64,000 bases of DNA from Paraphysomonas bandaiensis (Eukaryota; Protista; Chrysophyceae). Below the pieces are notes generated by a model. It was not told where the DNA came from, ran no database searches, and saw only the letters and a program-made list of their open reading frames with translations. The stretch's first letter is position 1; each line of letters starts with the position of its first letter. The translations under genes were made by a program, and so were the position numbers. The stretch lies in the NCBI GenBank assembly GCA_965644295.1, contig CBFFRP010000419.1, forward strand, positions 1 to 64,000. The letters run 5' to 3'. Positions 1 through 45,600 of the stretch are shown in pieces.

Positions 1-3000
1 CGACAACGAGAATACTCGTGGGACTTGGTATCTGAAAAACACCCAATAATTAGTTATAATATCACGAAATACTCTACACATCATGCATATGTCATACACT
101 TCAATCTTCTCTTCCCTGTTTACTCCTTTCTCATTCTCAAGCAAACAACGGCCGAAGGCGATGAGAGCTTCAACAGGACCTAAAGCGTTTAGTCAGAATA
201 TCAGCAACATTTGATTCTGATGGCACGTGTTGAAACCATTATCACCTCCTTCCACGCACCTTTTGCCTCAATTGCAAATTCGGCATCTTGTAATATAATG
301 TCTTGACCCTCTTATGATTTTCCACCAAAATCTCCGCCAGAGTAATCATCGACGCATTTATTCGCAAAAATTAGAGTAGGTTCCAACTGCACACAAGTAG
401 GCCTAGCCCGCAAGCAATTCTTCGAAAACCAAACATCTCTCAGTATTGGACTTCATCTCACACAAATGATCACCATGTAGTCGACCCTTCTGAACTGACC
501 ATATATAACCAGCTCTGATCCTTGTTCGTGCCTAAGGACCAAGTTCTCCTTCATAATATCACCAACTCATACTTTGAAATAAAACTATCGACCAATGCAT
601 TGAACTCTTTCGACATTATATCCTTCGCAGTAATGATGGATTTGTTTGAAAATAACACTCGACGAAAGAGTATACAGTAGTATCACACTCCTCCCAACAA
701 TGTCAACATTATAAACTCACATGGAGAATGCAGATGCAATTGTTTGTCATTCATTTAACTGCTGCCGATAACCATCATCGAAATTGAAACTTGCTGTCAG
801 GAAATCTCCAATAAATTTATGATCAAATAATGTCATCGCTACAATAACACTCCTGATAATATGATACTGTTGAACAAATATTCTTCGTAACATCACACAC
901 AACCATCACGAATGCGTAACTTTAAGAACCATTGGAATATAAATAACAACGGGTCATTCGAGGAAAAAAGAAAACACACACACTGTACCACTGCACGAAT
1001 TAAATAATGTTGCATGGTCCTTGAATTCACAAGCTGTCGAACACTGAACCGGCATTGTCGAAATACCAATCACTCCTTTCCTTTATAATTGTAGCACAAT
1101 ATTTGAACATAACTCATAACGAACAACTGAACATCCGAATTACTTTGTCTCAAAGATTCTCACACAATCTATTAAGATCATCAACTAAATCCATACAAAT
1201 TGCAGAACAAAATATATGTACTCTACTTCACCATGTAACATATACCCTGTTATATGTTTGAGACACTTTTCAACTTATTCCGAATTAACTCTTCTTTTGC
1301 ATTCATTGAAACAGTGAAGAACGACGAAGAACTATAACTGATCACACTGACAAAACTTTCACCCTGATCATTCAGTCTCTCTCAAAAAAAAAACTTTGAT
1401 ACGCTGACACCTCATTCGCAACATAATAACTCTTTCTTTCAAAAGAAATCGTAACTTCACGCAGTCGAATAATAACAGTACAAATCCCAGAAACCAACCA
1501 AACGAAATAAACGCTCTGCTGCTTTGTATACCTACTAGGTCCTTGAATAAAAATAACCTTAATTTTAACTCTCGGGTTTCCCTCGTGTTGCTGTCACTCG
1601 GCGGGTGTATATACCTTTGAATAGGTTGTCGATCTCTAAATAAACTCTTATAGCCACATGCACGACACAACCAAACCAGACCCCTGTAACATATATGCTG
1701 CTCTCCTGTAGCACACCCTCCTGATCATGTGTACTGTTTCCATTGCCTATACACCCTCCTGAACTCTTGACCAAACATATCTATTTATGGTTAGAGTACC
1801 ATGATGCCGCACACAACTCAACAGTTCCCACAGAAGTCCTTGAACTGATTTATAACTCTCTGGTCCATTTCTCATCAATCGTAGGAACCATCTCCTGAAT
1901 CTTTCATTCATTTAACATAATTTTCAACTCCTAACTTCACCACCCGCACATCTCCATGCACATAGAACTTTCCACTTCCTTTCGACCCGGTATATATAAT
2001 TTTTTTTTTTGTACCACAAGTTGAGCCTATACCCAAATTCAAACTCTGCATGCGGTACAAACACAAAATTTTAACTGCTACTGTGATGCAATACCACTGA
2101 CACCACCGGCCGCTACCCAATAATACGGAGTATATTCTCCACTAAAAGCTTTTATGAAACTGATGCGCAAGAACAACCGGTACTCCTTTATCCACTGTTG
2201 GCATCGACCATACCGCAAGCTTTTAAAACTATGCTTCATGAGCTGCCGGCTCTACAACAATTCTCGCAACGAGACTAAGTACCTTAACCTCATGACCATC
2301 TATTTATAGAAACGCACGAGTTGACACAACTGCAGCCAATATATAGATCTTCCGACTCCTCGTGTTCTCTTACCAACGACGCCCATTTATATCTTCTTGA
2401 CACGTCCACACACATATATTATATATATATAATCCAATCCAATCATATGTCCAACTATCACAATATGAATCCCGGAAACAACTGTTCGATGCAACAGATT
2501 AGGTTGCCCTTAGCTAGTAGCAAACATGCGAAACATCTGATGTAAATACACCTCCTCTATCACTGACGGATTATAACAGTAACTCCTGGCAACAAGCACC
2601 ATTTTCTAAATTGCCAACACCTGATACATATCTCGAGTCATCTACTGAACCCTCCTGAACATTATATTCACACTCAACTAAGGCTCTGATATCAACATAA
2701 TCCAACTGATGTATATGCCTTACGTAATATATGCTACTGGCTGTCGTACAAACCAAATCTCCATGCCGATCCCACACTCAAATATACTCTCGACCTCAAC
2801 ACAGCAGCAACAATTTAGTGATAGCACTGTTTGCCCTTAGAATCCGGCGGCCATCATGCATGCATCCTCCTATTGATTCTGACCCTTATTTACCCCAACA
2901 AACCGCTACAGCACATACTCTGTCGAGGCCCACTGGATCTAACTCATATTTTTCACTAATTATAACATCGCCCTCTTGATCGTACTCTATGTTTGACGAT

Positions 3001-3560
3001 CACAGACAACAACCGGACATTCGCAAAAATCATACGTAAGATCCTGCATCGAAGATCACCACTTTCCACGCATTCCAATCTCTGCCGATTTTCACCGCCC
3101 AATGGAAGGCGAGGCTAATGTTCCCGGAAAAGCCAGAACAGGAGGAATATTGATGCCACCTTGGTACATTATAAACCAATCAACCCAGAAGAACTACAAA
3201 AGTCAATCCAATCCCCAACAAAGAATTACTTGCACTAGTTACACTCCTATTACGCCGTTGAACCACTCGAATAGTCATTATTTTATAAGCACAAGGGCCT
3301 CCTCATTCGATAAACACTCCAAGAGGCCGCCACCACAGGAGCAAACGGCTGGTGATCTGTGTTCTCCAAATACCCGTGATATGTTTCTTTTTCAATTCCT
3401 CTTCCACAGTCTCTAAACTCAAAAACAACACTCCTATACCCCATACATACATACTCTCTCTGCTCTTCCAAATACCGTAACCACACTGCTGGAGCGATGG
3501 CTACCCAGATAACATACCTCGAGAACAAGTTAATGTTGTAAGGCAATTAACAAGCCACAA
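1..3560 (+). mobile_element. Heavily degenerate, A/C-rich coding-like relic, possibly a non-LTR retrotransposon
   Basis: No long ORF or coherent exon chain over 3.5 kb. The + strand is A/C-skewed as in LINE coding strands, with fragments such as SNHRRI (~340) and TLSALPNTVTTLLERWL (~3450-3505). No diagnostic RT motif was recovered. Confidence 0.25.
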
Positions 3561-3777
3561 GTTGATAGTAATGATAGTGTTATTAACTTGTTTTATCAGA
3601 GGTTATCTGTGATAATAATGACTAGCATTCTAATCTGTCTTCTATCACAGACTACACCTACAGTTTTCTACACTTGGCTACATATATAGCCTCTACTCTT
3701 ATACTAACCTACTGTACATATTGGACTGTATATATCCTACACTGTATTGTCATCATACACTGCATAATGGTATACCG

Positions 3778-4719
3778 TTACCCTACTGTAGCTGGCTGTT
3801 CATACACTGTATATATCCTGTATACTATACATCCACAGTATAGTGCAATATACAGCAGTATACTCTCAAACCAAGCTTTCACTCCAATGACAGCCAACCT
3901 CCTATACGGGGATGACAACACCTCGTTTAAACTGTAATTTGCATTAATTAAATAATTATTAATATTTGCAGCCTGATATGTTGACTCATGCTTTTGATTT
4001 ATTATATAGACGTCGCTCGTCGTATATCGTTTTAATTTAGTATTGATTGCGTCCCAATCAGCCCTGCTTTGTTTTTCTAGTTCTTCAAAATATACAAATA
4101 ATTTACCTCCTAGATCTGAATTAAATTTAGATGTCAATACGTCCGCGCCAGCCTCTAAACACAGGTCACGGCCAAGTACGTAAGTATTCATAAATAGGGA
4201 TATGGTTGATTTACCTATACCCTGAGGGCCTTTTAAAAATATAATGGATTCGTTTTTATTACCCTTTGTCATGTTTGCAAACCACTTCAATAAATATTCA
4301 TATTGTGCCTGATCATTGGATGCCAATATTTCTTTAATATATGATAAAAACGCCTGTACACCTTCCTTACTCTCATCATCAAAGTCTTCATATGGTTTAT
4401 AGTCATGTGCAAACTGAGCGGCTAAATTTAATTTCTTTTTATCAGGGAATATACCTTTGCCTAATTCATAAACTATTTCACGAAGCCCTTTAAATTCAGT
4501 GAAATAATATTTTGCTATCCGTTTATCCATTCTGTTAAAATACGTTTCTTTAACTTTTTTGTGTTCCATAATGCTAAATTTTTTATGCCCTGTTCTATAT
4601 GCATGTGCACCGCTTGTAAGTGGGAAAAAATAATTTGTTACGTAAGTTTTTGACTGTTCATAAGTCAGGTTATCAAGGTGTTCTAAATCAAACTTTTCAA
4701 AACTCTCTTTTGTACTCAT
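3778..4719 (-). CDS. Superfamily 3 (D5/NrS-1-like) helicase, probably C-terminally truncated and reading into host DNA
   Basis: Walker A GPQGIGKS, Walker B VYFEE, motif C NYLINAN, and upstream YEYLLKWFA typical of viral SF3 helicases. The last ~45 codons come from host-like low-complexity DNA. Confidence 0.88.
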   Translation of the reverse strand: MSTKESFEKFDLEHLDNLTYEQSKTYVTNYFFPLTSGAHAYRTGHKKFSIMEHKKVKETYFNRMDKRIAKYYFTEFKGLREIVYELGKGIFPDKKKLNLAAQFAHDYKPYEDFDDESKEGVQAFLSYIKEILASNDQAQYEYLLKWFANMTKGNKNESIIFLKGPQGIGKSTISLFMNTYVLGRDLCLEAGADVLTSKFNSDLGGKLFVYFEELEKQSRADWDAINTKLKRYTTSDVYIINQKHESTYQAANINNYLINANYSLNEVLSSPYRRLAVIGVKAWFESILLYIALYCGCIVYRIYTVYEQPATVG

Positions 4720-4801
4720 TAATATACAAATATATATTATTTTTTAAATAATAAATTTTTTAATTTTTTATTTTTTTAAAAATCTAAAGGTTTTTATAAA
4801 T

Positions 4802-6160
4802 TTAATATTGCAATGTTGCGAAACCGTTTTCAATCAAAATGACTTGATCAAAATAAGCGTATGTATCTATGCGTGCGGTCACAGTACTAGCGGATGAGCT
4901 AAAACGAGGCATAAAAAATATATCGTCAGTGCTAGAATTATAACCCTGATATACTGTTTCCATGCCTGAGCTGCTGTAACTTTCTAGATCTAAACCCAAG
5001 TAAAAGTTGGATGATGTTGAAAGGTTAGTCATATCACCGGCTACCTCAGCATTTGCTACTGGATCTTGTAAACTATAACTTATTGAATTAATAGAGGGCT
5101 CATGATTCAAATCGCTTACGCTTCCAATAGCTCTGACCAATTCGCCGAAAAATTCAGGAATACAACTGGGTGCTTTAGTTGGTACAGTCTTACTACCTAG
5201 TCGGACACTGTATGACTCTAGACCGAAATGATTTGATGACAGAGGGAAATAGGTGACTTCTCCAGCGTGCTTAGTACGCATACTGAAAAACAAGGATCGC
5301 AAAGAGTTAAATTTAGCAGATACGGGTATTGAAAGCTCAACGTTGGGGGCAATATTTCCAGTATGTGAATAATTTCTGTAATCTTGCACAACCCATTTTA
5401 TAGGTCCACCATTTGAAGCCTTATTAATTGTACCCATTGCATCATCTGATAACTCCATAAAATTACAAATATATTCAACGTCATTAATAGCTATTGATGT
5501 TATGGCTTTATCGCAACAAATGCCCTCTAATGGATTATTAACCAGAGTTATTTCTAGTCGTAAAGGCGCGCCGGTCATTGCGAACAGTGGAATATATTTA
5601 TCACTGTAGCTTAAAAAATTCACTATTGGAATTGTATAATATTTTTTAGCTGTACTGGCTCCATTTGCAACTGTTGCATAATCGTTTAAACTTTGCCCCA
5701 CTGTCAAGTGATCGGTGACATTTGCTGTCGCATCAATGGAGCCTAAAGTCTCAGTTCCCGTTAAAATTGAATGCTTATTAATAAAAGAGTCGCTGGACTG
5801 TTGTAAAACCATGAGCTCACCGACTAGATTATTATAATTTTGAATATCTGAAAGTAAAGTAGAGCCATGAAATACTCGCACTCTAGAAATTAGGGAATGA
5901 ATACCCGCCTTATCTAGTCTAACGAATTGTGACACGGTCGCAGGGTCAGATGTTTCTGTGGTAACAATCAATGATAATTTTAAAAGTGAATCAGCGCCCG
6001 ACATTACGAGATTACGACCGGTAGGAACATTAATAATTATGGTCTCTCCTGCACCATATGGCCCCAAACCATTTTGTGGAGCTATATTATTCTGATAATT
6101 ACGCGCATAACTTGAATTTATATTATTTGTATATAATACGTTTTTTGGTAATCCTGACAT
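4802..6160 (-). CDS. Major capsid protein (double jelly-roll, PLV/virophage-type)
   Basis: 452 aa, beta-rich. Motifs include P-x-N...GETIIINVP, SLISRVRVFHGSTLLSDIQNYN, KYIPLFAM-APLRLEITL, SLRSLFF and FYLGLDLE, and it sits next to a penton-like gene. Confidence 0.88.
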   Translation of the reverse strand: MSGLPKNVLYTNNINSSYARNYQNNIAPQNGLGPYGAGETIIINVPTGRNLVMSGADSLLKLSLIVTTETSDPATVSQFVRLDKAGIHSLISRVRVFHGSTLLSDIQNYNNLVGELMVLQQSSDSFINKHSILTGTETLGSIDATANVTDHLTVGQSLNDYATVANGASTAKKYYTIPIVNFLSYSDKYIPLFAMTGAPLRLEITLVNNPLEGICCDKAITSIAINDVEYICNFMELSDDAMGTINKASNGGPIKWVVQDYRNYSHTGNIAPNVELSIPVSAKFNSLRSLFFSMRTKHAGEVTYFPLSSNHFGLESYSVRLGSKTVPTKAPSCIPEFFGELVRAIGSVSDLNHEPSINSISYSLQDPVANAEVAGDMTNLSTSSNFYLGLDLESYSSSGMETVYQGYNSSTDDIFFMPRFSSSASTVTARIDTYAYFDQVILIENGFATLQY

Positions 6161-6208
6161 ATATACTATAAATAGATAAATATTTTTTATAGTATAATAA
6201 AATATAAT

Positions 6209-6649
6209 TTATATAAATGTGCTGTCATCTTGTGTTAACTTAGCTAAAGCTTTTCTTGTGTTGTGTTTTTCTAATTTATTACCTGCGTTATGAGCCTTTT
6301 TAAATGCTTTTTTACTGTGTTTGTCGGCTTTATTGTGTAGCTTATGTAGCTTATGTACGCCTTTATGCCCTTCGTGTAATCCTGCTTCCAATAGTCTAGA
6401 TGCTGATCCAACAACGGGCATTGTATTTAATCCTGCTTTATTAATAGCGTGTATAGTTTTATCGCCGACGCCTAATATTTTATCTGCTACGTCAATTGCC
6501 TTTGCTGATTTATCAAGTCCTTTATTTACTCCACTCTGAACCTTGTCTAATACGTCGTGTGTTTTTTGTCCTAGTTTATGGATTCTGTGATCGGCCTTAC
6601 GACCTAGTTTACGAAATTTACGATTTAGCTTTTTGCCTAGTTTTGACAT
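6209..6649 (-). CDS. Basic Lys/His-rich viral protein (putative core or membrane-active virion protein)
   Basis: 146 aa with repeated KLG-x-K units at the N-terminus and a His/Lys-rich C-terminus. Lies between mCP and MCP and shares an upstream motif with MCP. Confidence 0.7.
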   Translation of the reverse strand: MSKLGKKLNRKFRKLGRKADHRIHKLGQKTHDVLDKVQSGVNKGLDKSAKAIDVADKILGVGDKTIHAINKAGLNTMPVVGSASRLLEAGLHEGHKGVHKLHKLHNKADKHSKKAFKKAHNAGNKLEKHNTRKALAKLTQDDSTFI

Positions 6650-6679
6650 GTATATATACTATATTGAGAGAAATATTTT

Positions 6680-7417
6680 TTATTCAATAGTTAATAATAA
6701 ATTTAAAGACCAATGTAAACCGTTTAATTCTAATATATCTGCGTCTTGGTCTAATAATTGGACATGTAAAGTATTTATATTATGTATATCATGTACTAAG
6801 CTCTTAATATTATTAATGTTTTTATAATTAATAATGGATCCTGCATTAACATCAACAGGGACAGAGGTAATAATAGAGGCTTTATTAGGTGTGGCACTAT
6901 TTATATTATTTAAAACAAAATTTGACGATGCTATTAAAACGTTTCTTACTGTAAATAAATTTATACCAATTGTTGATAATAATATTAATGAATCTGAATA
7001 ATAGGTTGTATTATCTTCAAATCCTAATAATTCAAAACAGGTTGAAGTATTTGAAAAAGAAAAATCATAAGTACTATGGGTAAATTGTAATTTATTAGTT
7101 GATGAGTTATAAGTTATTGTAAATCCTGGCTCTAAATTGGACTGTAAAAAACTTATTAAAGTTCTAATATTATAATTGGCTTTTGTAATTGTAAGTGAAT
7201 ATGGAATACTATTTAAGGTATAATTTAGTGTGTTATTAGTTGAATTAACATTATAAAAAGAGTATGGGATAGAGGCATCAATTACTGATATATAGGCTTT
7301 ATGACGTCGTTTAACGTCTATCTTTGGTAATATAAAAATACAATCAGTAGTTTTATTATTTAGGTATTGATTAGCTGTCTTGCTGTTTAGAACAATCTGT
7401 ATTTTCTCCATTAACAT
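6680..7417 (-). CDS. Minor capsid (penton) protein, PLV/virophage-type
   Basis: 245 aa with the motifs I-x-LNS, SIPYSFYNVNSTNN, NY, ELLGF, and C-terminal LLDQD..LELNGLHWSLNL, typical of PLV single jelly-roll pentons. Confidence 0.85.
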   Translation of the reverse strand: MLMEKIQIVLNSKTANQYLNNKTTDCIFILPKIDVKRRHKAYISVIDASIPYSFYNVNSTNNTLNYTLNSIPYSLTITKANYNIRTLISFLQSNLEPGFTITYNSSTNKLQFTHSTYDFSFSNTSTCFELLGFEDNTTYYSDSLILLSTIGINLFTVRNVLIASSNFVLNNINSATPNKASIITSVPVDVNAGSIINYKNINNIKSLVHDIHNINTLHVQLLDQDADILELNGLHWSLNLLLTIE

Positions 7418-7586
7418 TATTAGATATTTTTATTTCTGCAAAATCATAAGTCAACATGTCTGTATCTATATTATTATTTCTGTTTAATTTTGGTGTGTCT
7501 AAGTTAATTACTTTGTCTAAGTCTATAATATTTTTCTTTGGAAATTCATAATTATCATAGTTTATTTCCCATTCTAGGCCGTCCAT
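7371..7586 (-). CDS. Small hypothetical viral protein (71 aa)
   Basis: ATG at 7586 is preceded by TATAT like the other viral genes. Its 3' end overlaps the mCP start. Confidence 0.5.
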   Translation of the reverse strand: MDGLEWEINYDNYEFPKKNIIDLDKVINLDTPKLNRNNNIDTDMLTYDFAEIKISNNVNGENTDCSKQQDS

Positions 7587-7626
7587 ATATAAGTATATCA
7601 CATAATATATTTATATATTTTACATC

Positions 7627-7669
7627 TAAGGGATAATTTCGCGAACAATTATCGCGTTTTTATCCCTTA
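7627..7669 (-). terminator. Hairpin 1 (putative transcription termination/polyadenylation signal)
   Basis: TAAGGGATAA...TTATCCCTTA perfect 10-bp arms with an inner CGCGA/TCGCG stem. Confidence 0.55.
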
Positions 7670-7750
7670 ATTTACCTTATCAGTTTATCAATTGCATTTT
7701 TTTATAATATTTTATTTCCATCCTACAGAATCACTGCGATATTTTATATC

Positions 7751-7793
7751 TAAGGGATAATTTCCCCGAAAATTTAGGGATTTTTATCCCTTA
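7751..7793 (-). terminator. Hairpin 2 (putative transcription termination/polyadenylation signal)
   Basis: Same 10-bp arms and same 43-nt length, with an inner TCCC/GGGA stem. Overlaps the stop codon of ORF 7791-8075. Confidence 0.6.
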
Positions 7794-8075
7794 TTTCCAT
7801 CCTACAGAATCACTGCGATATTCACCGTGTAGAAAATCATATTTTCTTAATAATTCAGTCCTTTTATCTTCGTCTTTATTTTCATATATGATTAATTGCC
7901 GTTCATTTAATAGCTCTACTTGTAACTCTTTCTTTTGTTTCTGAAGTTCTGATAATGTAATTTTCATGTCTTCTATTTCTCTGTCTAAATTCCTTATCTC
8001 TTCCTGAATTTTAGGCATATGCGTTTTTCTAATACTGTATACTTCACCTTTCAACTTTAATAAATACTCACTCAT
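7791..8075 (-). CDS. Small coiled-coil viral protein (paralog A)
   Basis: 94 aa, heptad-rich. Aligns by eye to ORF 8175-8504. Confidence 0.7.
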   Translation of the reverse strand: MSEYLLKLKGEVYSIRKTHMPKIQEEIRNLDREIEDMKITLSELQKQKKELQVELLNERQLIIYENKDEDKRTELLRKYDFLHGEYRSDSVGWK

Positions 8076-8126
8076 TATAATATATAACTATATATTTTTT
8101 TTTAATTATTTTATATTTTTACATAT
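8073..8126 (-). promoter_or_regulatory. Repeated viral promoter/leader motif (copy 1)
   Basis: ATATGTAAAAATATAAAATAATTAAAAAAAAATATATAGTTATATATTATAATG is nearly identical to the leader of ORF 8544-8975. Confidence 0.6.
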
Positions 8127-8174
8127 GTAATAATTGAAATAAATTATAATTTAATGGTCAATGTTTCATTGCTG

Positions 8175-8504
8175 TTAACAGTCCTCGTCGCTGTCTGTGT
8201 CATCATCAATATAAACATCGGTAACATTTTTTTTGAATAAATTCAAGCACGGTATGCGTCTCTTGCCGCGGTATAATTCTAATAGCTGCCTCTTTGTTAA
8301 CAAAGACATTTTTTTATCACTTATTTTATTGTTAAGTTTTAATAATTCTTCTTTTATGCTATTCTGTTTATCTATTAAAATGTTCATTTCCTTTTTGCCT
8401 TGTTCTATTTCGTTCTGTACGTTTGTTTTGTGATCACGTTTAACACTAAAAATTTTACCTTCCATTTCCATAAAAAAAAATTTATTACTTTCGGCCTTTG
8501 ACAT
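8175..8504 (-). CDS. Small coiled-coil viral protein (paralog B)
   Basis: 109 aa with an acidic tail, preceded by ATTATA before the ATG. Confidence 0.7.
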   Translation of the reverse strand: MSKAESNKFFFMEMEGKIFSVKRDHKTNVQNEIEQGKKEMNILIDKQNSIKEELLKLNNKISDKKMSLLTKRQLLELYRGKRRIPCLNLFKKNVTDVYIDDDTDSDEDC

Positions 8505-8543
8505 TATAATGTATCATTACAAAAAAATAATTCTATAATGTTT

Positions 8544-8975
8544 TTAAAACGTTAGTTTATCAATAGCATTCATTGAATATACCCACTTATCCGTTTCCAT
8601 TTTCTCTTTATCGCCGTCATTTTCAATGATATAAACAACTGATTCCCAAAACTTATTTTTAAGATAAAATTCATCTTGAACATCATCACCTTCGTTTTCT
8701 CTTAAACCTGATTTAATAATAAATTTTTCATGCCAATCGTAACATTCAGGTGTATTGTTTGCTGGTCTAAAAGTAAAAAAATTGCTACTTAAAAAACCCT
8801 TTTCAAACCGTTTGCTTATTATATCATTGACTTCATCAGCTGGCCTATTTAACTTATGTTTTAGACAGTCAAATGGATCATTATGAATGTACTTTTTATG
8901 TTTGTAGTAGTACTTACCGTTACGCTCGGAATCAACATTACTACAACAATGAAAATATTTTAATTCTTTTGACAT
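8544..8975 (-). CDS. Hypothetical viral protein
   Basis: 143-aa intact ORF, the first gene after the right terminus, with the conserved leader motif. Confidence 0.7.
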   Translation of the reverse strand: MSKELKYFHCCSNVDSERNGKYYYKHKKYIHNDPFDCLKHKLNRPADEVNDIISKRFEKGFLSSNFFTFRPANNTPECYDWHEKFIIKSGLRENEGDDVQDEFYLKNKFWESVVYIIENDGDKEKMETDKWVYSMNAIDKLTF

Positions 8976-9024
8976 TATAATATAACTATATATTTTTTTT
9001 TAATTGTTTTATATTCTTACATAT
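8973..9024 (-). promoter_or_regulatory. Repeated viral promoter/leader motif (copy 2)
   Basis: ATATGTAAGAATATAAAACAATTAAAAAAAAATATATAGTTATATTATAATG. Confidence 0.6.
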
Positions 9025-9128
9025 ATAAAATAGGGAGTGAAATACGGCATGTCTATATATAGTGTTAAACAGGTCTGTTGTTCCGTCTATCTGTTGTAAT
9101 TGTTCGGTGTTTAAGTCAGGGTTGGTAT

Positions 9129-9194
9129 ATCGTTTGGTTAATAGGGTCGGTTGATCGTTTGGTTGATAGGGTCGGTTGATCGCTGGGGTTAATA
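9129..9194. repeat. 25-bp tandem repeat (~2.6 copies) in the viral subterminal region
   Basis: ATCGTTTGGTT(A/G)ATAGGGTCGGTTG at 9129 and 9154, with a partial copy at 9179. Confidence 0.85.
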
Positions 9195-10644
9195 TGTATA
9201 GTATTATTTTATTTTGATTGCATTTTTTTTGACATTTTTGTTGAAAATATTTATTTCTGATATTTATTTTTTAGAAAAAAGTTTTTTTTAAAGAAAAATG
9301 TTGTAAAAAATGTAGTGTATACTGTTGCAAAATTTGTGAAAATAAGATTTTTTTTGCATTTTTTATTGTGAAAGGTGACACGACATTTTTTATGTAAAAA
9401 AGTGTATAAAAAAATGTAATGTATAATATTGGAAGCACTTGTACGTGATACACAGCGATACCATAGGGGTAAGGGTCAGTATAAATTAATAGTTTTTATG
9501 GTCACGGTTAACACGGCTAGGGTCGAAGACCCCCCCCCCTCTCTCTGTGTGTGTCAGAGAGAGTACAATATAAAGTTGATAATAGTTTTATGAGGTAGTT
9601 TGGACAAACTGAAATGTATTGTCTAATACCGTTAATTTCTATTGGTTGGTAGTAGTGACAACTTTAATGTAGTAAACGACAAGAAAAGATTTGAATATAG
9701 TTATATTTAACCACGGAATATATTATTTAATCTAGTCTAATTGGTTGAATTACGTAGTCAAAGAAACAAATGATTCAACCTAGTCAACTTAGTATGATGA
9801 TATATGTATATGATACAAAGGGAAGCACTGTATATCTGGCGATATAGCTAGAAACTACAACAAGAATAGGCATTTTCTTTTGTTTTACGGATACTTATCT
9901 ACACGGACTTATATAATATAAGGAGATTTTCGTATGGGACTATCAAAATATAGATTGCTATTGACTATTAGCCATTTTCAAACAAGTTAGAACGTTAAAA
10001 GAAGTTTATAGTATTCAAACAATATATATATATAGACTCGATTATTATTGCATATAGGCAATAATTTATGCGCTATCATGTTATCATTCATGTCAAACAC
10101 ATCAACAACATAATGTTATACTGCTTTCATCAACCTCTAATTATCTTCCGGATCTTGACACGCAAAAGAGTTTGTCAGTATGAGCGTATGAGCTTTCATC
10201 GCAACTTAGTAATATTCGATTAAATAATTAATATCTATCTAGTTCACACGGCATTAATTTATTCAAAATCTAACTGTTTTCTAGAGCACAGATTAACATG
10301 GTCAATGAAATACTACCACTAAGCCGAAGTGCACATATACACTTAATAGTCATGTCATAAAAACGTGTGTTTAGGTACGTGAGTCGGCTTTAGAAGTTTC
10401 TCAATATCTCAATATCGTAGATAAGCGGAAATGATAATATCGATCACTGAATTATAATATGCACAACCAAAACTCCACTTTAAGCTGAGCTTCCCCTTAT
10501 AAATCTACTAATACTCATACAGTGAACTTATAATTGCTGCCTTCAATAAGAAGAAACTGGTAAAGTAAATACCTTAGCACCGCTTGTGGAGGACAATGAC
10601 CAACGACATCAATATCTAGCTATAGAGCCGGGAAACTGCAGGAA

Positions 10645-20870: not shown

Positions 20871-22819
20871 ATGTTAGCTAATCCTACTACACCATTTCAA
20901 TCTGCTTCTCTCTATGTTGGAGATCTTCAGCCTGATATTACCGAGGTAACACACTCAGTGATATCTTAAAATAAGTCTTTATGGTGTTTTTTTATAGGCT
21001 TATCTCTTTGAGATGTTTAATCGTGTCGGTCCTGTGGCCTCTATTCGTGTATGCAGAGACACGGTACGTATATATATATACCCCTCTAGTCCTCATATAT
21101 TAACGGGTATCTTATCAATAGGTCACTCGTCGATCTCTTGGATATGCTTATGTTAACTTCCATCATGTTCAAGATGCGGAACGTGTTCTTGACACCATGA
21201 ACCATACTGAAATCAAGGGAAAGCCTTGCAGAATGATGTGGTCTCAGCGTGACCCCAGCCTCCGTAAATCAGGCGTTGGTAATGTGTTTGTCAAGAACTT
21301 GGCACCAACTGTGGACAACAAGGGTCTCAATGATGTGTTCTCAGTCTTCGGTAACATTTTGTCCTGCAAAGTTGCCACTGATGAGAATGGCAACTCCAAG
21401 GGATATGGATATGTGCACTACGAGACTGCTGAGGCTGCCCAAGAAGCTATCCAGAAGGTTAACGGTGTCGTGATCGAGGATCAGGAGGTCGTTGTGGGCC
21501 CTTTCCTTCGTCGCCAGGATCGTGTTAACAAAAATGACTGGACCAATCTGTACTGCAAGCAGTTTCCTGAGTCGTGGACTGAGGAGAAGTTGAAGGACAC
21601 CTTCTCCCAGTACGGCGGCACTGTCACAAGCTGCAAGCTCGCTGTCGACGAGGAAGGCAAATCCAAGAAATTCGGATTCATTGATTTCGCTGATCACGAG
21701 TCTGCTCTTAAAGCCCTTGAGGAACTCAACGGTAAGCAGATTAAAGTTGAAGGAAAGGACGGAGAAACCGAAACCTTCGAGCTCTATGTGAGTCGCGCCC
21801 AAAAGAAGTCTGAGCGCGCTCGTGAGATGAAGTACAGAATGGATCTTGCCAAAGCTGAACAGATGAACAAGTACCAGGGCATGAACCTGTACGTTAAGAA
21901 TATTGACGAGGCTCTTACTGAAGAACAGTTCCGTGAGTTGTTCGCTCCTTTTGGTACCATCACCAGCTGCCGCGTTGTGCGTGACCAGGGATATGCTTTC
22001 GTCTGCTACTCCAGTCCCGAGGAAGCAACACGTGCCGTGTCTGAGATGAACGGAAAGATGATTGGTGGCAAGCCTCTCTTTGTTACTCTGCACCAGCGCA
22101 AGGAGCACCGCCGTGCTCAGATGGCTCAGGTCCACGGACTTGGTGCCAGGGGTGGTCCCCGTTTCATGGGACAGCCTCCTATGCATTACATGGGCATGTA
22201 CATGAACCCCTCTGGACAGCCTATGCCTCCTCGCCCACCATACCCCATGATGGGAAGTGGCATGATGCCCCGTGGACAAGGCGGCAGAGGTGCCACACCT
22301 GGCTTCCAGGGCGGTAGAGGTTACCCCATGCCTCAGTACAACATGCCTGGCCAGCAGGGTGGTGTCAAGAGAGGCCCAGTTATCAGTGGTCAGGGTCGTA
22401 GAGGACCTACTGGAGGAAGAGGTGCTCCCGGTGGACGTGGTATGCCTCCCCAGCAAGGTGGACGTGGTGTCGCTGGTCCTGGCATGAAGTATAGCAACCA
22501 GGTGCGAAACCAGCCTGCTATGCAGATGGGAGGTATGCCTATGCAACAGCAGCAGCCCCCTGCACAGATGCATGCTACAGATGGACTCGATCACGCCACT
22601 CTTGCCCAGGCTGACCCCCAGACCCAGAAGAATATGATCGGTGAGAGACTTTACCCTCTTATTCTTCAACACCAGCCTACTTTAGCTGGAAAAATTACTG
22701 GTATGTTGCTTGAGATGGATAACAGTGAGCTTGTTCATTTGTTGGAATCACCTGAGGCGCTCGCGACCAAAACCCAAGAAGCGATGAGTGTCCTCGAGGC
22801 CCACAACCAGGGCGCGTAG
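20871..22819 (+). CDS. PABP: Cytoplasmic poly(A)-binding protein (4 RRM + MLLE); 3 exons
   Basis: ASLYVGDL, RRSLGYAYVNF, SQRDPSLRKSGVGNVFVKNL, and C-terminal QKNMIGERLYPLI...AGKITGMLLEMDN. Confidence 0.97.
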
Positions 22820-27472: not shown

Positions 27473-27517
27473 TATAGAGATACAGTCGCAAGAAATGACA
27501 ATGACACACTGCGTATA

Positions 27518-28555
27518 GTATGTATGTATGTATGTATGTATGTATGTATGTATGTATGTATGTATGTATGTATGTATGTATGTATGTATGTATGTATGTA
27601 TGTTTGTATGTATGTATGTATGTATGTATGTATGTATTTATGTATGTATGTATGTTTGTATGTATGTATGTATGTATGTATGTATGTATGTATGTATGTA
27701 TGTATGTATGTATGTATGTATGTATGTATGTATGTATGTATGTATGTATGTATGTATGTATGTATGTATGTATGTATGTATGTATGTATGTATGTATGTA
27801 TGTATGTATGTATGTATGTATGTATGTATGTATGTATGTATGTATGTATGTATGTATGTATGTATGTATGTATGTATGTATGTATGTATGTATGTATGTA
27901 TGTATGTATGTATGTATGTATGTATGTATGTATGTATGTATGTATGTATGTATGTATGTATGTATGTATGTATGTATGTATGTATGTATGTATGTATGTA
28001 TGTATGTATGTATGTATGTATGTATGTATGTATGTATGTATGTATGTATGTATGTATGTATGTATGTATGTATGTATGTATGTATGTATGTATGTATGTA
28101 TGTATGTATGTATGTATGTATGTATGTATGTATGTATGTATGTATGTATGTATGTATGTATGTATGTATGTATGTATGTATGTATGTATTTATGTATGTA
28201 TGTATGTATGTATGTATGTATGTATGTATGTATGTATGTATGTATGTATGTATGTATGTATGTATGTATGTATGTATGTATGTATGTATGTATGTATGTA
28301 TGTATGTATGTATGTATGTATGTATGTATGTATGTATGTATGTATGTATGTATGTATGTATGTATGTATGTATGTATGTATGTATGTATGTATGTATGTA
28401 TGTATGTATGTATGTATGTATGTATGTATGTATGTATGTATGTATGTATGTATGTATGTATGTATGTATGTATGTATGTATGTATGTATGTATGTATGTA
28501 TGTATGTATGTATGTATGTATGTATGTATGTATGTATGTATGTATGTATGTATGT
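27518..28555. repeat. (TATG)n microsatellite, ~1.04 kb
   Basis: Near-perfect tetranucleotide array with 4 point variants. Confidence 0.99.
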
Positions 28556-34371: not shown

Positions 34372-34959
34372 CATACATACATACATACATACATACATAC
34401 ATACATACATACATACATACATACATACATACATACATACATACATACATACATACATACATACATACATACATACATACATACATACATACATACATAC
34501 ATACATACATACATACATACATACATACATACATACATACATACATACATACATACATACATACATACATACATACATACATACATACATACATACATAC
34601 ATACATACATACATACATACATAGTACATACATACATACATACATACATACATACATACATACATACATACATACATACATACATACATACATACATACA
34701 TACATACATACATACATACATACATACATACATACATACATAGTACATACATACATACATACATACATACATACATACATACATACATACATACATACAT
34801 ACATACATACATACATACATACATACATACATACATACATACATACATACATACATACATAGTACATACATACATACATACATACATACATACATACATA
34901 CATACATACATACATACATACATACATACATACATACATAGTACATACATACATACATA
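34372..34959. repeat. (CATA)n microsatellite with periodic GTA interruptions
   Basis: Tetranucleotide array with interruptions at 34624, 34743, 34862 and 34941. Confidence 0.99.
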
Positions 34960-38307: not shown

Positions 38308-41060
38308 ATGTTTTGGCCTCGCCTTCCCAAGCTAAACCGTAGCATAAGAAGTGAGATAGATGAACATTCCAATTCAGATCCTCCTGTTACCAAGACATTG
38401 GAGCCTAATCAAGCACAGAAGACCTCTGAGATGTGTGTATTTAGAGCTCTTGTCCTATTGTCTCTATGCACTGCAGCGGTACTATGTGGCTCCATCTCAT
38501 ACATTAGTTTGAGTAAACTCGAGCAAAGGAATTATAATACACATTATGATTCAGTCACACGTCAGTTGAAGCAATCAGTTGAAGGATTCGTAGAAAAGTA
38601 TCATGATGCAGCTCATGAGCTGTCGAACTTGGCTGCTGTCTTCAACCCGAATGCATCGGCGTGGCCGAATGTTGCCCTTCCAAAATATTACTTGTTGGAT
38701 AAATATTCTAATAAAGTTTCTGGTGGGAAATATTCTGCTGTCATACCTATTGTGAAGCCTGAAGATTTAGCAGAGTTCGAAGAGTTTAGCAAAGACGTGA
38801 TACGAAATGACGAGTATATGTCGTCACAGCCCCAGCTGTATTCTGCTTATGGTATTGGTGTGTTTAACATCAGCACAACAGGTGTGCCTGGTCCTGACAC
38901 GACTGGAGCTATTCCAGGGCGTACCAGGCGGTATCTGGCACCCGCATTGAATGTAGGATCCGTTCTCGTTGAGGCTGGTTATCTTCTTCTCAATTTCCGC
39001 ACCATACCTTTTGTGGCGGACTCTTTGGATGATATTTTGACCTGCGTAGAGGACAGCCACTCCGAATGCTATGGAATGACAGATTTTATTGGCCCTTCCC
39101 ATGAAACTGCCGTAATCCGGCCTGTGTTGTCGTTAGATGGGACTGATACCGTTGTGGGATTCAGTACAGTTGTCTTTAGTTGGGAAGAAGCGCTCTCCAA
39201 AGAATTACCAGCAGGTGGAGTAAATTTAAATATTAAATTATTGATTCTTTGTTACACATCAACGTATACTCGCAGGAATGCCATCCTTAGACTGCGTGAT
39301 CACTTCGAGTGGAGACACAACGCACACTTTCTCGCTAAACTCTAAAGGAGCACGGCACAGAGGACAAGGAGACCTACACGATAAAAAATTTTCAGGAATG
39401 GCGTCTCATATCCATTTGTCCTCTCCTAATTCAGAGGCTGAACTATCGGCAGTGTATACTTTTGTTATGTATCCTACTGATGACTTCATGAAGGAATATA
39501 TATCTAACACTCCGCTGTACGCAAGCATCGGGTCAGTATCCCTCATAATATTCACCTCAATCGTGTTCATTACATACGATGCCCTGGTGAAAGAGGAAAG
39601 TCGTGCTAAAATCAACCTGTTAAATATGAAAAGAGACTTTGTGCGGTATATTTCTCACGAAATCCGCACCCCTCTGAATACGGTTTCTGTTGGTCTGGGC
39701 CTTTTGGAGGAGATCATTCTTAAAGATCGGTCTTCATATGGAGAGCTTTTGGAATTAACTCGTGATGTGCAGTTGGGTTCTGAATTGGCTGTGTCTGTAC
39801 TGAACGACCTTTTAAATTTTGATAAGCTTGAGGCTGGAGAATTCCAAGTTGCACGCGCTCCTGTTAAAATATACAGCCTTGCTGAAACCACGCTTAAGTG
39901 CTTTAAAATGACCGCACTCAAAAAAGAAATTGAATGCACTTTAAAATTTGTTAATGAATTTGACAAGTCATTGTATCACAATTCACCAATAGTATACGGT
40001 GACAAGATGAAACTATCTCAAGTGCTGAGAAATCTAATATCGAATGCGCTGAAGTTCACTGATAAGGGTGGGTCAATTGATATATCTGTTACATGGAAAC
40101 AAGCAGCCGACTGCGAGATGTTTTCACTCAATAAGTCGAATAGGAATAACAGGGAAAGACCTGAAGGGTATGTGATTGTGTCAGTCCAGGATACCGGAAA
40201 TGGCATATCTCAGGAGAGTCTGCGCCTACTCTTTCGTGATGGTATGCAATTTAAAGCAAATGAACTGCAGGCCGGTCAAGGTGAGCTATATGTTTTTGTA
40301 TTGAAATTACTTTTTACGAAAATGACACAGGAAGCGGGTTAGGATTGTTTTTGTCTTACAAAATTATTGAGATGCATGGCGGGTATGCTATTCTTACTAT
40401 AGCGCGCTCTGTTGACTATCCTGCTGTTTATGACAATGCAGGAGGATGTGGGCGACATCGCCCGGTGAAAACAGGGGCGCCGTATTTTCTTTTCAACTTC
40501 CGACCTTCTCTTCTAAAGAATCGGTATCCTCGAAACGATATTCTGGACACAAACAGCTTCAATATCCGTTGACAGAAGAGGCAAATTCGCTATCAAGGAT
40601 ATCCTCCAAATCAACTCATGGTGAATACCTACAGAGGAAGTCTACGATAGAGCTCATGTCGGGGTCACCCGACGCTATTCAAGTACCTCAGTCAGATCGA
40701 ATGAGTATTTTAGTAGTAGATGACACGAATTCGAACAGAAAAATGGTCTGCCGTCTGCTCAGTAATCGAGGATACGATTTTCTAGAGGCCCGTGATGGCA
40801 GAGAGTGCATTGATATAGTTACACAAGGAATAGAAAAAGTGGACTGCATCCTCATGGATTATGAAATGCCTATATTAAATGGGCCCAATGCAGCGCAGCA
40901 GCTGAGGAATCTAGGGTATACACTCCCGATTATTGGCCTCACCGGAAACGTAATGCAGGATGATATTCATCATTTTCTGAATTCTGGGGCTGATCATGTC
41001 TTATCGAAGCCGTTGCAATTAGATAGTTTCATTGATATTATGAATGAGGCCATTGTATAG
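38308..41060 (+). CDS. Membrane hybrid histidine kinase (CHASE-like sensor, HisKA, HATPase, receiver); multi-exon
   Basis: Two TMs flank a domain with WPNVALP..PIV. H-box FVRYISHEIRTPLN, N-box NLISNALKFT, DTGNGI, receiver ILVVDD..ILMDYEMP..KP. Confidence 0.93.
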
Positions 41061-42624: not shown

Positions 42625-45600
42625 TCACGAGTTATCACGACTGTAAAACTGAGATGATGTAGACCCGCCGGATTGATGAGACGAAAATTCTGAGTATCTA
42701 ATCGAGGCTCCAGTCTTCGACATGCTTCTCTTGTTTCCACTACTCACAGACAGGGGGGCATTCACTGACCTCGACTTTACAACATCACGCTGGTGTTTCC
42801 ACTTCCCAGTTGTGACATCATGTGATCCGGCATCCACAAGAAGCTGCCTGGCTGCCTTTAGGCAAGAATAAGGCACACGAGAGTCGTCAATATCGAATAT
42901 TGTTCTCCCAGTCCGGTCGGAACCTCCAATGCCTCCCCCCGGTATGCTTTCAAGAACTAATTTAAGAATGTTAGGACCCTCTGGGTAGCTATCTTGGCTA
43001 GTACAGGCTAACTGCTCACAGAGAACAAACAACGCACTTCGCCCAGATTCATCCTCAAGTAGAGGACTTATGCGAGCCCGCAAGCAGGATGATAGGAGAG
43101 TGCGATATGCGGTCATGTCCTCCTTCGGAGGAGGGAAAGCTTGCAGCAGGAAGTATAGCTGCGTATGCCCCTTCGACACTTGTTGATTGGAGTCCCATGC
43201 GGCCCCTACAAAACAATAATCATTACTAAAAGCTCTCTAGAAACAATAATAGACTCTCCTACCAGCCTGGATTAAAACTTGCGCAGCTTTGACCCAGCAC
43301 TTTACAGCACTGCTCCTAGTGCGAGTAGAGGGCTGCGTATGTGAGTGGATGGTACCATGTATTGTAGACAGTCCTGTCAAATTCAACGTTGAATCGTCTA
43401 AAACACTCTGCATATCGCCAGCATCTGAAGTGTGGGGATGGACGGAAAGCTGAGCTGCACGTTGAAGCACGAGATAGAGCGGGCCGACTTGGGAGTTACC
43501 CAGCGGCATCAGTCCATTCACATCACAACCTGATGCAACCAACCTTTCGATCACTGCAGTAGTTGCAGTTCTGACACTGTATTTAATACATAAACCATAG
43601 CATCGCGTATACATAATGAGTTATACCGTGAACATTCCACATGTAGTGGAGTTTGACCTAATGCATTCTTGATAGTAGACGACACTCCACGTTTAAGTAG
43701 ACAGTCCACTACACTCACTACACTTGTGGAAGTGCACACTTGTATCGCCTGTACAGAAATCAACACTACAACTTTGATACTCCAACCTGCTATCACCTTA
43801 TGCACAGCACTGTTCCCAGCGTGATCTTGCGCATTCACCTCCGCACCAAGCTGCAGTAAAGCTTCAGTTGTTTGGATAAGAAGCTTATCGTTTCCGTGAA
43901 AGTGTAGGCCCGAAATAGCCCGGTGAAGTGGAAGGACAGTGTGCGCAGAATCTCGCCAAAAATCAGATACCAGTGAATCACCTCTAGAGCGCACTATAGA
44001 CCGAATTCCCTGAACATCCCCGTCAAGAATAGCCGCAATCAGCTGGTCGATAGGTGTTGTTTGCTGATCAGAGTACAAGGAATTTTCAGAACGCCGTCGA
44101 GGGTGAGAAATCCCGGTGTTAGACGCATAATCGCGAGTATAAGTTCCATTTTGAGAGGAAGTACTCGGACGTCGTGAGCCATCGTGATGCAAATCGTGAC
44201 GGTGGCTGGAGACATCAGAAGACCTATTTAGAGACACCCCATTTGCAGATGGTCGAACTTCACTCCTCCACTTCTCCTTTGCCGTGACACTTTTCCAAGT
44301 CACTGTTTCCAATGGGCGATTAGCGCGCTGTACGTCAAAGCGACTTGATCCCTGCTTATCTTTCGAAAGTTCACTTCCAGCATCACTCGAACGATGTTCA
44401 AAGGCAGCATCAAGATCTTGGCGCAATTGATTTCGAAGAGTGTCTGGAAGATTCTCTATCATCGACAGAAATTTTCCTTGCATTTCTATAGAAATAATTA
44501 ATAATATCCTATCAAAGAACAATGTACTATACTCATATATAAATGCCACGAAATATTAGTTTTTACCACACCTTCAATTCTAGGAAGAGATGTCGTCTGG
44601 TTTTGTGAGTGAACAACACTCATAAAGCTCTCCATTTGCTGCTGCAGCAGAGATAGATAGCTATTCTGCATTTGTTCACGTTGTAAACTTAACTCTCGCT
44701 GAAACTCTAGCTTCAGTCCATCAACATCTATAGGCGTATGTTGAGATACCACTGCTGTGTTTTGAGTCTTCGAAGTAGACAACTCTTGTTGCAAGCGAGA
44801 CACCTCACGCTCCAAATTATCAATTATATTGTCCTTCGCCTACATACACGCTATCAATGATACAATGGTGAAGAATTCAACAATATATACCCTTAGAGAA
44901 GACATATGTTCAGTGACTAGAGACTGAATTTTAACACTATTATCAGAAGAATGTTTTTGACTCTGTTCTGACAATCTCAGATTCGATTCCTTTAGCTGTT
45001 CAGACAGTTGATGGATCGTTTTCTGTGCCTTCAACTCAGAAGACTTTGACGAGCTCTCCAACGAACTAATTGACTGTTTGAGAGTGGAAATTTCACTCTC
45101 GTATGAAGATTTCAGAGACAATAGCTGAGCTCCATAAGAAGACTCCGAGGCGGCGGCAATATCACGCGTCCGCGTATCGTATTCTTCCTGAAGAGCCTGA
45201 TACTTGGATTGTGTCATCTGGAGCATTTGTTTTGTCGATTGCAGTTCTTCTTTATGGCGTGTCATCAGTTCTGCGGTAGACCTCTCATAAGACTTTTCCG
45301 CGTGCTGGATCTGCTCTTTGTGAGTCGCTTTCAATTTAACGATCTCCTCAGACTGTGATTTTAAGTCCTGAATGTACTGCTCAATGCGCTCGGATAATTT
45401 CGTAATCTCCTGGTCTTTTGATAACGCTTTAGTAGTCAATCTCTCTATCTGTTGAGTCAACTCCCCTTTGGCACGATCAGTTTGTATTTTTAGAGAGGTA
45501 ATCTCATCATTATGAATGTCAGTCACTCTCATTATCTCATCTCTCCAAGACTTCGAAAGAGTATCCAACTCAGCTTTGTGTTCATCTGAAGCTACTAACA

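Follow-up and report, generated by a model that had tools for sequence, protein, structure and literature searches.

The question raised by this locus is how a compact run of virus-like genes came to lie among the genes of a protist. The locus sits near one end of a 64,000-nucleotide stretch of contig CBFFRP010000419.1 (assembly GCA_965644295.1, Paraphysomonas bandaiensis), and this whole stretch is referred to here as the window. Paraphysomonas is a colourless phagotrophic flagellate of the Chrysophyceae, within the Stramenopiles. We conclude that the virus-like genes are probably a truncated, non-autonomous endogenous fragment of a Polinton-like virus (PLV), of recent origin in the Paraphysomonas nuclear genome. 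This conclusion rests on results demonstrated below, namely the folds of the capsid proteins, the genes present, the truncation, flanks that identify the host, near-identical marine contigs and purifying selection.

Eight open reading frames (ORFs), all co-oriented on the minus strand, span positions 8975-3778 in the ORF list of the window. The island that holds them (~3.93-9.03 kb) has a GC content of 30.2% and is 90% coding, compared with 38-52% GC for most of the rest of the window. At the composition of the island a stop codon is expected about once per 12 codons, and the probability of a frame remaining open by chance is ~3e-18 over 452 codons and ~3e-10 over 245 codons. The ORFs are real and far beyond chance. 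These figures bear out the AT-rich island with eight co-oriented ORFs described in the first-pass annotation, which had been made from the nucleotide sequence alone. The features that carry the argument are as follows.

3930..9030, minus strand: viral (PLV-derived) part of the island, from PLV homology, GC content and coding density, with a composition shift at its left edge
3778..4719, minus strand: superfamily 3 (SF3) helicase ORF of the D5/primase-helicase type, 313 aa, 3'-truncated, from Pfam DUF5906 and relatives
4802..6160, minus strand: major capsid protein (MCP), predicted double jelly-roll, 452 aa, intact, from homologs, a structural model and Foldseek
6680..7417, minus strand: penton (minor capsid protein), predicted single jelly-roll, 245 aa, intact, from Pfam DUF5901, homologs, a structural model and Foldseek

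The two capsid proteins were examined through their relatives and through predicted structures. A word-indexed search returned 315 relatives of the MCP (best 85% identity), and coverage is 99-100% among proteins of 436-465 aa; the MCP gene is therefore full length. The MCP itself has no direct Pfam match, and 23 of 56 aligned relatives match PF16903 (Capsid_N), the N-terminus of capsid proteins of the nucleocytoplasmic large DNA virus (NCLDV) type. The penton matches Pfam DUF5901 (E 2e-7) and has 121 homologs (best 99% identical), relative to which it is full length. Because searches of both sequences against PDB chains gave no meaningful match, the folds were taken from predicted models. The AlphaFold model of the MCP, built from the family alignment (pLDDT 88.7, pTM 0.88), matches solved structures in Foldseek with probability 1.0, including the iridovirus MCP, Vp54 of PBCV-1, Sputnik, P3 of PRD1 and faustovirus (E down to 7e-19, TM ~0.6). 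In BFVD the same model matches NCLDV, virophage and adintovirus capsid models. The best of these structural matches are NCLDV-type capsids, with Sputnik at rank 43 among the solved structures. The penton model (pLDDT 90.6, pTM 0.80) is closest to the mavirus penton 6g42 (E 1.5e-10), followed by Sputnik 3j26_N, PBCV-1 8h2i_bG and the adenovirus penton base. The models thus predict a double jelly-roll for the MCP and a single jelly-roll for the penton, the folds that had been anticipated for the 452-aa and 245-aa proteins. No relative of the MCP was found in the INPHARED phage collection, and a PHROGs search of the island proteins matched the helicase only.

The MCP, penton and D5-type helicase are also hallmarks of giant viruses (Nucleocytoviricota), which raises the question of whether the island is a fragment of an endogenous giant virus instead of a PLV. 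Such an origin would fit the Capsid_N matches in the MCP family, the NCLDV capsid proteins at the head of the structural matches, and DUF5906 and DUF5901, both of which are virus-derived Pfam families. However, every longer relative is a 12-20 kb contig of PLV architecture (ATPase, penton/MCP block, rve integrase, few genes), and no other NCLDV core gene is present in the window (test set PolB, VLTF3, A32, D5 primase-helicase and MCP). In addition, PLV groups with NCLDV-resembling capsid modules have been described (10.64898/2026.06.19.733378). We consider a giant-virus origin extremely unlikely, and it was rejected because only the MCP, the penton and half of a helicase are present. Two other assignments were also rejected. 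A virophage would be expected to look different, as the island has no cysteine protease and no ATPase, its MCP is of the NCLDV type, and no sequence or Pfam link to virophage capsids was found; the description of the element as virophage-like in the first-pass annotation is not upheld, given the lack of a protease and of any such link. A Maverick/Polinton was rejected because protein-primed PolB, rve integrase and an adenovirus-like protease were not detected in the island or the window.

The assignment to the PLVs is further informed by related loci (designated here by L and a number). Five relatives of 11-16 kb, with MCPs 59-66% identical to that of the island (L001, L002, L008, L058 and L061), have a common block made up of an A32 ATPase, a small ORF, the penton, a ~150-aa protein and the MCP. 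An rve integrase with a chromodomain is present in L002, and a long DUF5906 helicase in L001. Of the genes of these relatives, four match the window: a 76-aa ORF, the penton, a 146-aa protein and the MCP. The A32 ATPases of the five relatives have no match in the 64 kb, and no ATPase Pfam match was found among the island ORFs. The rve integrase and every other gene of those relatives likewise have no match in the 64 kb. The absence of a polymerase, an integrase and an ATPase, previously noted for the island, was confirmed across the whole 64-kb window, and the loss of all three supports the view that this copy is defective alone. The element measures ~5.1-5.6 kb versus ~15-40 kb for a complete PLV. 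Both capsid proteins were found, whereas an ATPase, an integrase, and the size and terminal inverted repeats (TIRs) of a full element were not; the element is therefore PLV-derived but not a complete PLV. The earlier proposal of a PLV-derived element among protist genes is in this respect supported by the MCP, the penton, the SF3 helicase and the eukaryotic flanks.

The truncation of the element is evident in its replication gene. The helicase ORF matches Pfam DUF5906 (E 6e-15), PHROG DNA primase families (the helicase part of phage primase-helicases) and PDB 6k9e, annotated as 'Primase'. An exhaustive search returned 3369 relatives, mostly of 500-620 aa, which align through their N-terminal halves only. 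In the full-length relatives DUF5906 occupies the first half of the protein, and the long C-terminal region after it belongs to no Pfam family. The C-terminal halves of these relatives have no match anywhere in the 64 kb, and the helicase gene was therefore broken once, at its 3' end, with approximately the C-terminal half gone and no internal stops or frameshifts. The truncation falls at the left bound of the element, where the tail of the ORF runs into unrelated flanking DNA. The MCP, penton and SF3 helicase frames had all been described as uninterrupted; this holds for the MCP and the penton, given 99-100% coverage by relatives, while the SF3 frame is open but belongs to a 3'-truncated gene. 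The order of MCP followed by helicase is also found in the Tara Oceans contig L007, and the arrangement is therefore native to the lineage. No polymerase or primase domain was detected in the island, and its replication gene is limited to the N-terminal half of an SF3 helicase.

The identity of the host follows from the flanking DNA. The island lies within a single contig, bordered at one end by ~3.9 kb and at the other by >54 kb of coherent eukaryotic genes. The flanks encode, in long open frames, a poly(A)-binding protein (PABP) with RRM and MLLE domains, protein kinases, a kinesin motor, an M81 peptidase, a PCIF1-WW protein, an ankyrin protein and a hybrid histidine kinase. The PABP ORF (21197-22819) is 100% identical over 540 aa to a transcript of MMETSP1103 (taxon 36769, genus Paraphysomonas), and its next best matches are 70% and then 62% identical (the latter in P. 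vestita). MMETSP1103 is listed as a Paraphysomonas transcriptome (10.1101/2024.05.15.594285). Because the PABP is identical to a Paraphysomonas transcript, the host is a Paraphysomonas species.

The age of the insertion can be judged from close relatives in marine metagenomes. The loci L005 and L006 are 97.8-98.1% identical at the DNA level to window positions 7692-6030 and 7456-6510, and the contig name of L006 suggests that it comes from the Malaspina survey. L007 is 89% identical across window positions 6964-4335. The ratio of nonsynonymous to synonymous divergence (dN/dS, Nei-Gojobori) is 0.06-0.28 for the penton, the 146-aa protein, the MCP and the helicase, indicating that these genes diverged under purifying selection, that is, as parts of a functioning virus. 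The synonymous divergence (dS) is itself a mosaic, with values of 0.05-0.15 for the penton and the 146-aa protein, 0.38 for the MCP and 0.59 for the helicase, and modules have therefore been exchanged. Taken together, DNA identities of 98% and 89% and dN/dS below 0.3 indicate that the insertion is recent and that its sequence diverged under selection. The recency claimed in the first-pass annotation is supported on these grounds. Its suggestion of a probably undescribed lineage is too strong, as the MCP family has at least 315 database relatives, including IMG/VR entries, and chrysophyte PLVs have been published (PMC7805220, PMC10120064).

Intact genes under constraint could also be explained by use in the host. 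According to this alternative, the island is a retained or exapted capsid-only module that is turned on by an incoming PLV or giant virus and whose capsid proteins interfere with assembly of the invader. All seven complete ORFs are intact, dN/dS is below 0.3, the gene-start core described below is common to distant PLVs, and endogenous virophages and PLVs acting against giant viruses offer a precedent (PMC10945749; 10.1101/2025.10.09.676808). If true, the module would represent a minimal, non-mobile form of the virophage/PLV-type defence of Cafeteria and Tetraselmis. However, a pairwise dN/dS is for the most part a record of the viral phase, and with environmental contigs still 98% identical, too little time has elapsed for decay to become visible. 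The published cases are complete, reactivatable elements, a capsid-only fragment has no known defence mechanism, and there is no sign of expression. Consequently, we view retention for defence as highly improbable and favor a recent, truncated PLV insertion.

The bounds of this insertion differ in how well they are defined. At the left edge both homology and composition switch near 3.93 kb, and the bound is good to ~10 bp. On the right side the last demonstrably viral feature is a gene-start segment ending near 9028, and the GC content remains low as far as ~10.5 kb; the bound given for this side is a minimum estimate, with ~9550 as a possible end of the element. The bounds of 3923-9546 proposed earlier therefore hold at the left, where homology and composition shift, and are plausible at the right, where viral features are proven to ~9028 only. 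Two features mark the right side.

8976..9028, minus strand: AT-rich gene-start segment upstream of the 143-aa ORF, 94% identical to 8082-8130
9029..9550, no strand assigned: non-coding, G-over-C skewed stretch, from repeats and skew; either the terminal region of the element or host/junction DNA

The stretch at 9029-9550 contains a 25-bp tandem repeat in three copies (9118-9194) as well as short A/T-rich repeats, and a poly-C/(CT)n/(GT)n/(GA)n tract lies at ~9530-9565. Neither this stretch nor the flanks match any of the fetched PLV loci. When a 20-mer of the 25-bp repeat was scanned in IMG/VR and the JGI metagenomes, the outcome was 0 matches and one chance match; the latter (L059) is an unrelated locus of 54% GC and was discarded.

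These edges are central to a different explanation, in which DNA truly present in the culture (a free PLV, or one of several endogenous copies of full length) was mis-joined or cut short during assembly, so that the truncation is not biological. The left edge interrupts a gene, and the sequence changes there abruptly to unrelated DNA; low-complexity tracts lie at both edges, and in protist assemblies it is common for PLV regions to be broken up or mis-assembled (PMC10120064). The island is nevertheless inside one contig between ~3.9 kb of flank and >54 kb of coherent eukaryotic genes, and none of its frames shows the spurious stops that collapsed multi-copy assemblies typically contain. Truncated PLV fragments are moreover a known biological outcome, as likely truncated TsV-like fragments have been reported (10.1101/2025.10.09.676808). 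An assembly artefact is on balance unlikely. Several observations do weigh against a recent biological insertion and should be considered together. Both junctions are those of the assembly, and in PLV-rich protist genomes such elements are known sites of assembly breaks and mis-joins (PMC10120064). A repeat search of the window found no TIRs or flanking direct repeats around the island, and no target-site duplication marks an insertion. The right edge is neither defined by homology nor sharp in composition. The protein collection searched, in which the MMETSP transcriptomes are included, has no entry identical to the MCP and so gives no sign of expression. The genes counted as missing are judged by comparison with relatives whose MCPs are 59-66% identical, and in L005, the closest contig, the small ORF is preceded by a homolog of the 143-aa ORF instead of an ATPase, so that gene order differs in this sub-lineage. 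Finally, the searches turned up no long contig from the closest (>85%) lineage; a single-protein scan of IMG/VR gave nothing, and an alignment-based scan gave 47 loci, all at <=42% identity.

If the element is a recent PLV insertion, its origin can be outlined as follows. A full-length relative of 12-20 kb, similar to the metagenomic contigs with the same block, would have integrated recently by means of its own integrase, and the copy would then have been cut down by deletion or rearrangement, or would have been only partly inserted. Besides the core of the capsid block, the fragment retains three accessory ORFs and the first half of the helicase; on its own it is unable to replicate, to package DNA or to move. 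The genes look like separate transcription units, and hairpins as well as AT-rich gene-start segments lie between them. At most, the fragment might supply capsid proteins in the presence of a related PLV, or of a giant virus with a transcription machinery that recognises those starts.

The remaining features of the island are its small ORFs and the cassette that two of them occupy.

6209..6649, minus strand: lysine/histidine-rich protein, 146 aa, in the same position between penton and MCP in all relatives
7371..7601, minus strand: 76-aa ORF overlapping the penton start, conserved in the capsid block, from homology
7693..8543, minus strand: variable cassette with two coiled-coil ORFs, absent from L005, with repeats
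8075-7791, minus strand: 94-aa coiled-coil ORF of the cassette
8504-8175, minus strand: 109-aa coiled-coil ORF of the cassette
8544..8975, minus strand: 143-aa ORF, first gene of the fragment, with a homolog in L005

The 146-aa protein is 44-52% identical to the ORFs at the same position in L001 and L002 and 97-99% identical to its counterparts in L005 and L007 (dN/dS 0.06-0.12), and it has no Pfam or PHROG family. It may be an internal or DNA-associated virion protein. A Lys/His-rich protein of ~150 aa always lies between the penton and the MCP (L001 9504-9947, L002 9459-9914, L008 2221-2706, L058 4207-4713), and it is under strong purifying selection. The small ORFs that precede the penton in L001, L002 and L008 are 40-55% identical to the 76-aa ORF, and that of L005 is 97% identical. 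The 143-aa ORF, which also has no Pfam or PHROG family, has a diverged homolog (~50% aa identity) at the start of L005.

The two ORFs of the cassette are weakly paralogous (25% identity, E 3e-5), and their coiled-coil Pfam matches are below threshold. Duplicated intergenic sequence brackets the cassette, with 7712-7743 identical to 7791-7822 (100%, 32 nt), and a second repeat (7615-7672 and 7739-7796, 81% identical) carries a hairpin. In L005, which is 98% identical, the cassette is missing and the 143-aa homolog is followed directly by the 76-aa ORF. The loss or gain of these two ORFs between such close relatives, together with the mosaic of divergence described above, indicates that the lineage evolves by cassette swapping.

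Two gene starts of the island share a sequence whose core may extend beyond this lineage: the 49 nt preceding the 94-aa ORF and the 49 nt preceding the 143-aa ORF show 94% identity. In a comparison of the cassette region with every fetched PLV locus, the matches in ~10 distant contigs (MCPs 26-42% identical) all fell on the gene-start segment, and in L056 (362-450) this segment lies directly upstream of the helicase gene. The core was also seen at L010 ~3496-3563, L028 ~4853-4920, L053 ~2957-3024 and L025 ~4628-4695, and in the window at 8076-8130 and 8976-9028. For a 14-nt core, taken as found in the window just upstream of the start of the 94-aa ORF and with G or A accepted at one position, 645 kb of PLV loci contain 7 matches where 1.0 +/- 1.1 are expected; for a 10-nt core the count is 67 and the expectation 31 +/- 5. 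The DNA is AT-rich, and some of the loci may be near duplicates. Six of the seven 14-nt matches lie <=40 nt upstream of an ORF of >=50 aa. Within the window alone the strict gene-start pattern is not significant, and the mimivirus/PgVV early motif AAAATTGA (10.1101/2022.07.28.501842) is not enriched. The counts point, modestly, to a gene-start core shared with distant PLVs and distinct from that motif. An Rfam search gave no matches, and a scan for bacterial promoters and terminators has no bearing on a eukaryotic virus.

The fragment can be placed beside several known systems. PLV insertions in chrysophytes are already known, and this is another example. Chrysophyte genomes contain 33-104 copies of PLV/virophage MCPs, of up to ten types, and their endogenous viral elements are typically 15-30 kb long and of lower GC content (PMC10120064). 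PLV MCP transcripts have been found in P. vestita (PMC7805220), and endogenous TSV-like PLVs are known from ochrophytes (10.64898/2026.06.19.733378); the class name Aquintoviricetes is used for PLVs in the same work. The ochrophyte and chrysophyte endogenous PLVs (PMC10120064, PMC7805220) resemble the fragment in their double jelly-roll MCP and penton, their SF3 helicase-type replication gene, their position as low-GC islands in host contigs, their stramenopile host and the abundance of their relatives in aquatic metagenomes. In contrast to these elements of 15-30 kb, the fragment measures ~5 kb, has no ATPase, integrase or TIRs, and has a truncated helicase. The best BFVD matches of the MCP are unnamed.

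Gezel-14T/PgVV (10.1101/2022.07.28.501842) also has co-oriented, apparently monocistronic genes with AT-rich spacers and a double/single jelly-roll MCP/penton pair. PgVV is, however, an isolated PLV of virophage lifestyle that is complete (ATPase, tyrosine recombinase, TVpol) and carries AAAATTGA, in which the fragment is not enriched, and no sequence-level link between the two was found with the methods used. Mavirus and the endogenous mavirus-like elements of Cafeteria (PMC8547959, PMC10945749) similarly involve a small DNA virus integrated in a heterotrophic stramenopile flagellate, and the penton fold of the fragment is closest to that of mavirus. Virophages differ in having a cysteine protease, pPolB, an rve integrase and a virophage-type MCP, none of which is present in the fragment, whose MCP is nearer to the NCLDV type. 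The TsV-like PLVs of Tetraselmis (10.1101/2025.10.09.676808) share a conserved structural core with variable accessory and replication modules, and occur as both truncated and complete copies. Their host is a green alga, and their complete copies are 18-19 kb long with TIRs of 0.6-1.7 kb, whereas the fragment has no TIRs. The capsid protein of TsV-S1 is a weak structural match to the MCP of the fragment (BFVD rank 35).

The locus documents a PLV insertion in Paraphysomonas, an ecologically important marine bacterivore, and the near-identical sequences from open-ocean metagenomes connect to this genus a metagenomic PLV family that otherwise has no host. The locus also shows how such elements vary, through cassette gain and loss and mosaic divergence, and how they decay, with packaging, integration and replication functions lost while the capsid genes are still intact. 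The current picture is unchanged by this example, as large-scale PLV endogenisation in chrysophytes has already been published.

Other observations concern the relatives and the flanks. The assembly GCA_014466275.1 contains at least three distinct relatives on separate contigs (L008, L060 and L061; MCPs 59-63% identical), and in L060 a protein-kinase gene of 761 aa lies amid the PLV genes. In the window, the hybrid histidine kinase gene of the flank (39278-41060) encodes HisKA and HATPase_c domains followed by a receiver domain and is of eukaryotic type. Tetranucleotide arrays, (GTAT)~260 at 27513-28555 and its reverse complement (CATA)~148 at 34372-34959, are inverted relative to each other and enclose ~5.8 kb of host genes (an Arb2-kinase gene and a 620-aa ORF); short GTAT-like repeats also occur at the left flank of the island, at 3674-3937. 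Very long minus-strand ORFs of 1182, 171 and 703 aa, with a strong T-over-A skew, occupy 44840-51111, where an in-frame 111-bp tandem repeat (x3.9) is found at 46853-47283 and the sole Pfam match is a weak one to DUF4431. A 387-aa ORF at 56462-57625 matches Pfam DUF5898 barely above threshold (29.5 versus 28.9 bits), a family with an accession near those of the virus-derived DUF5901 and DUF5906, and a viral link is conceivable.

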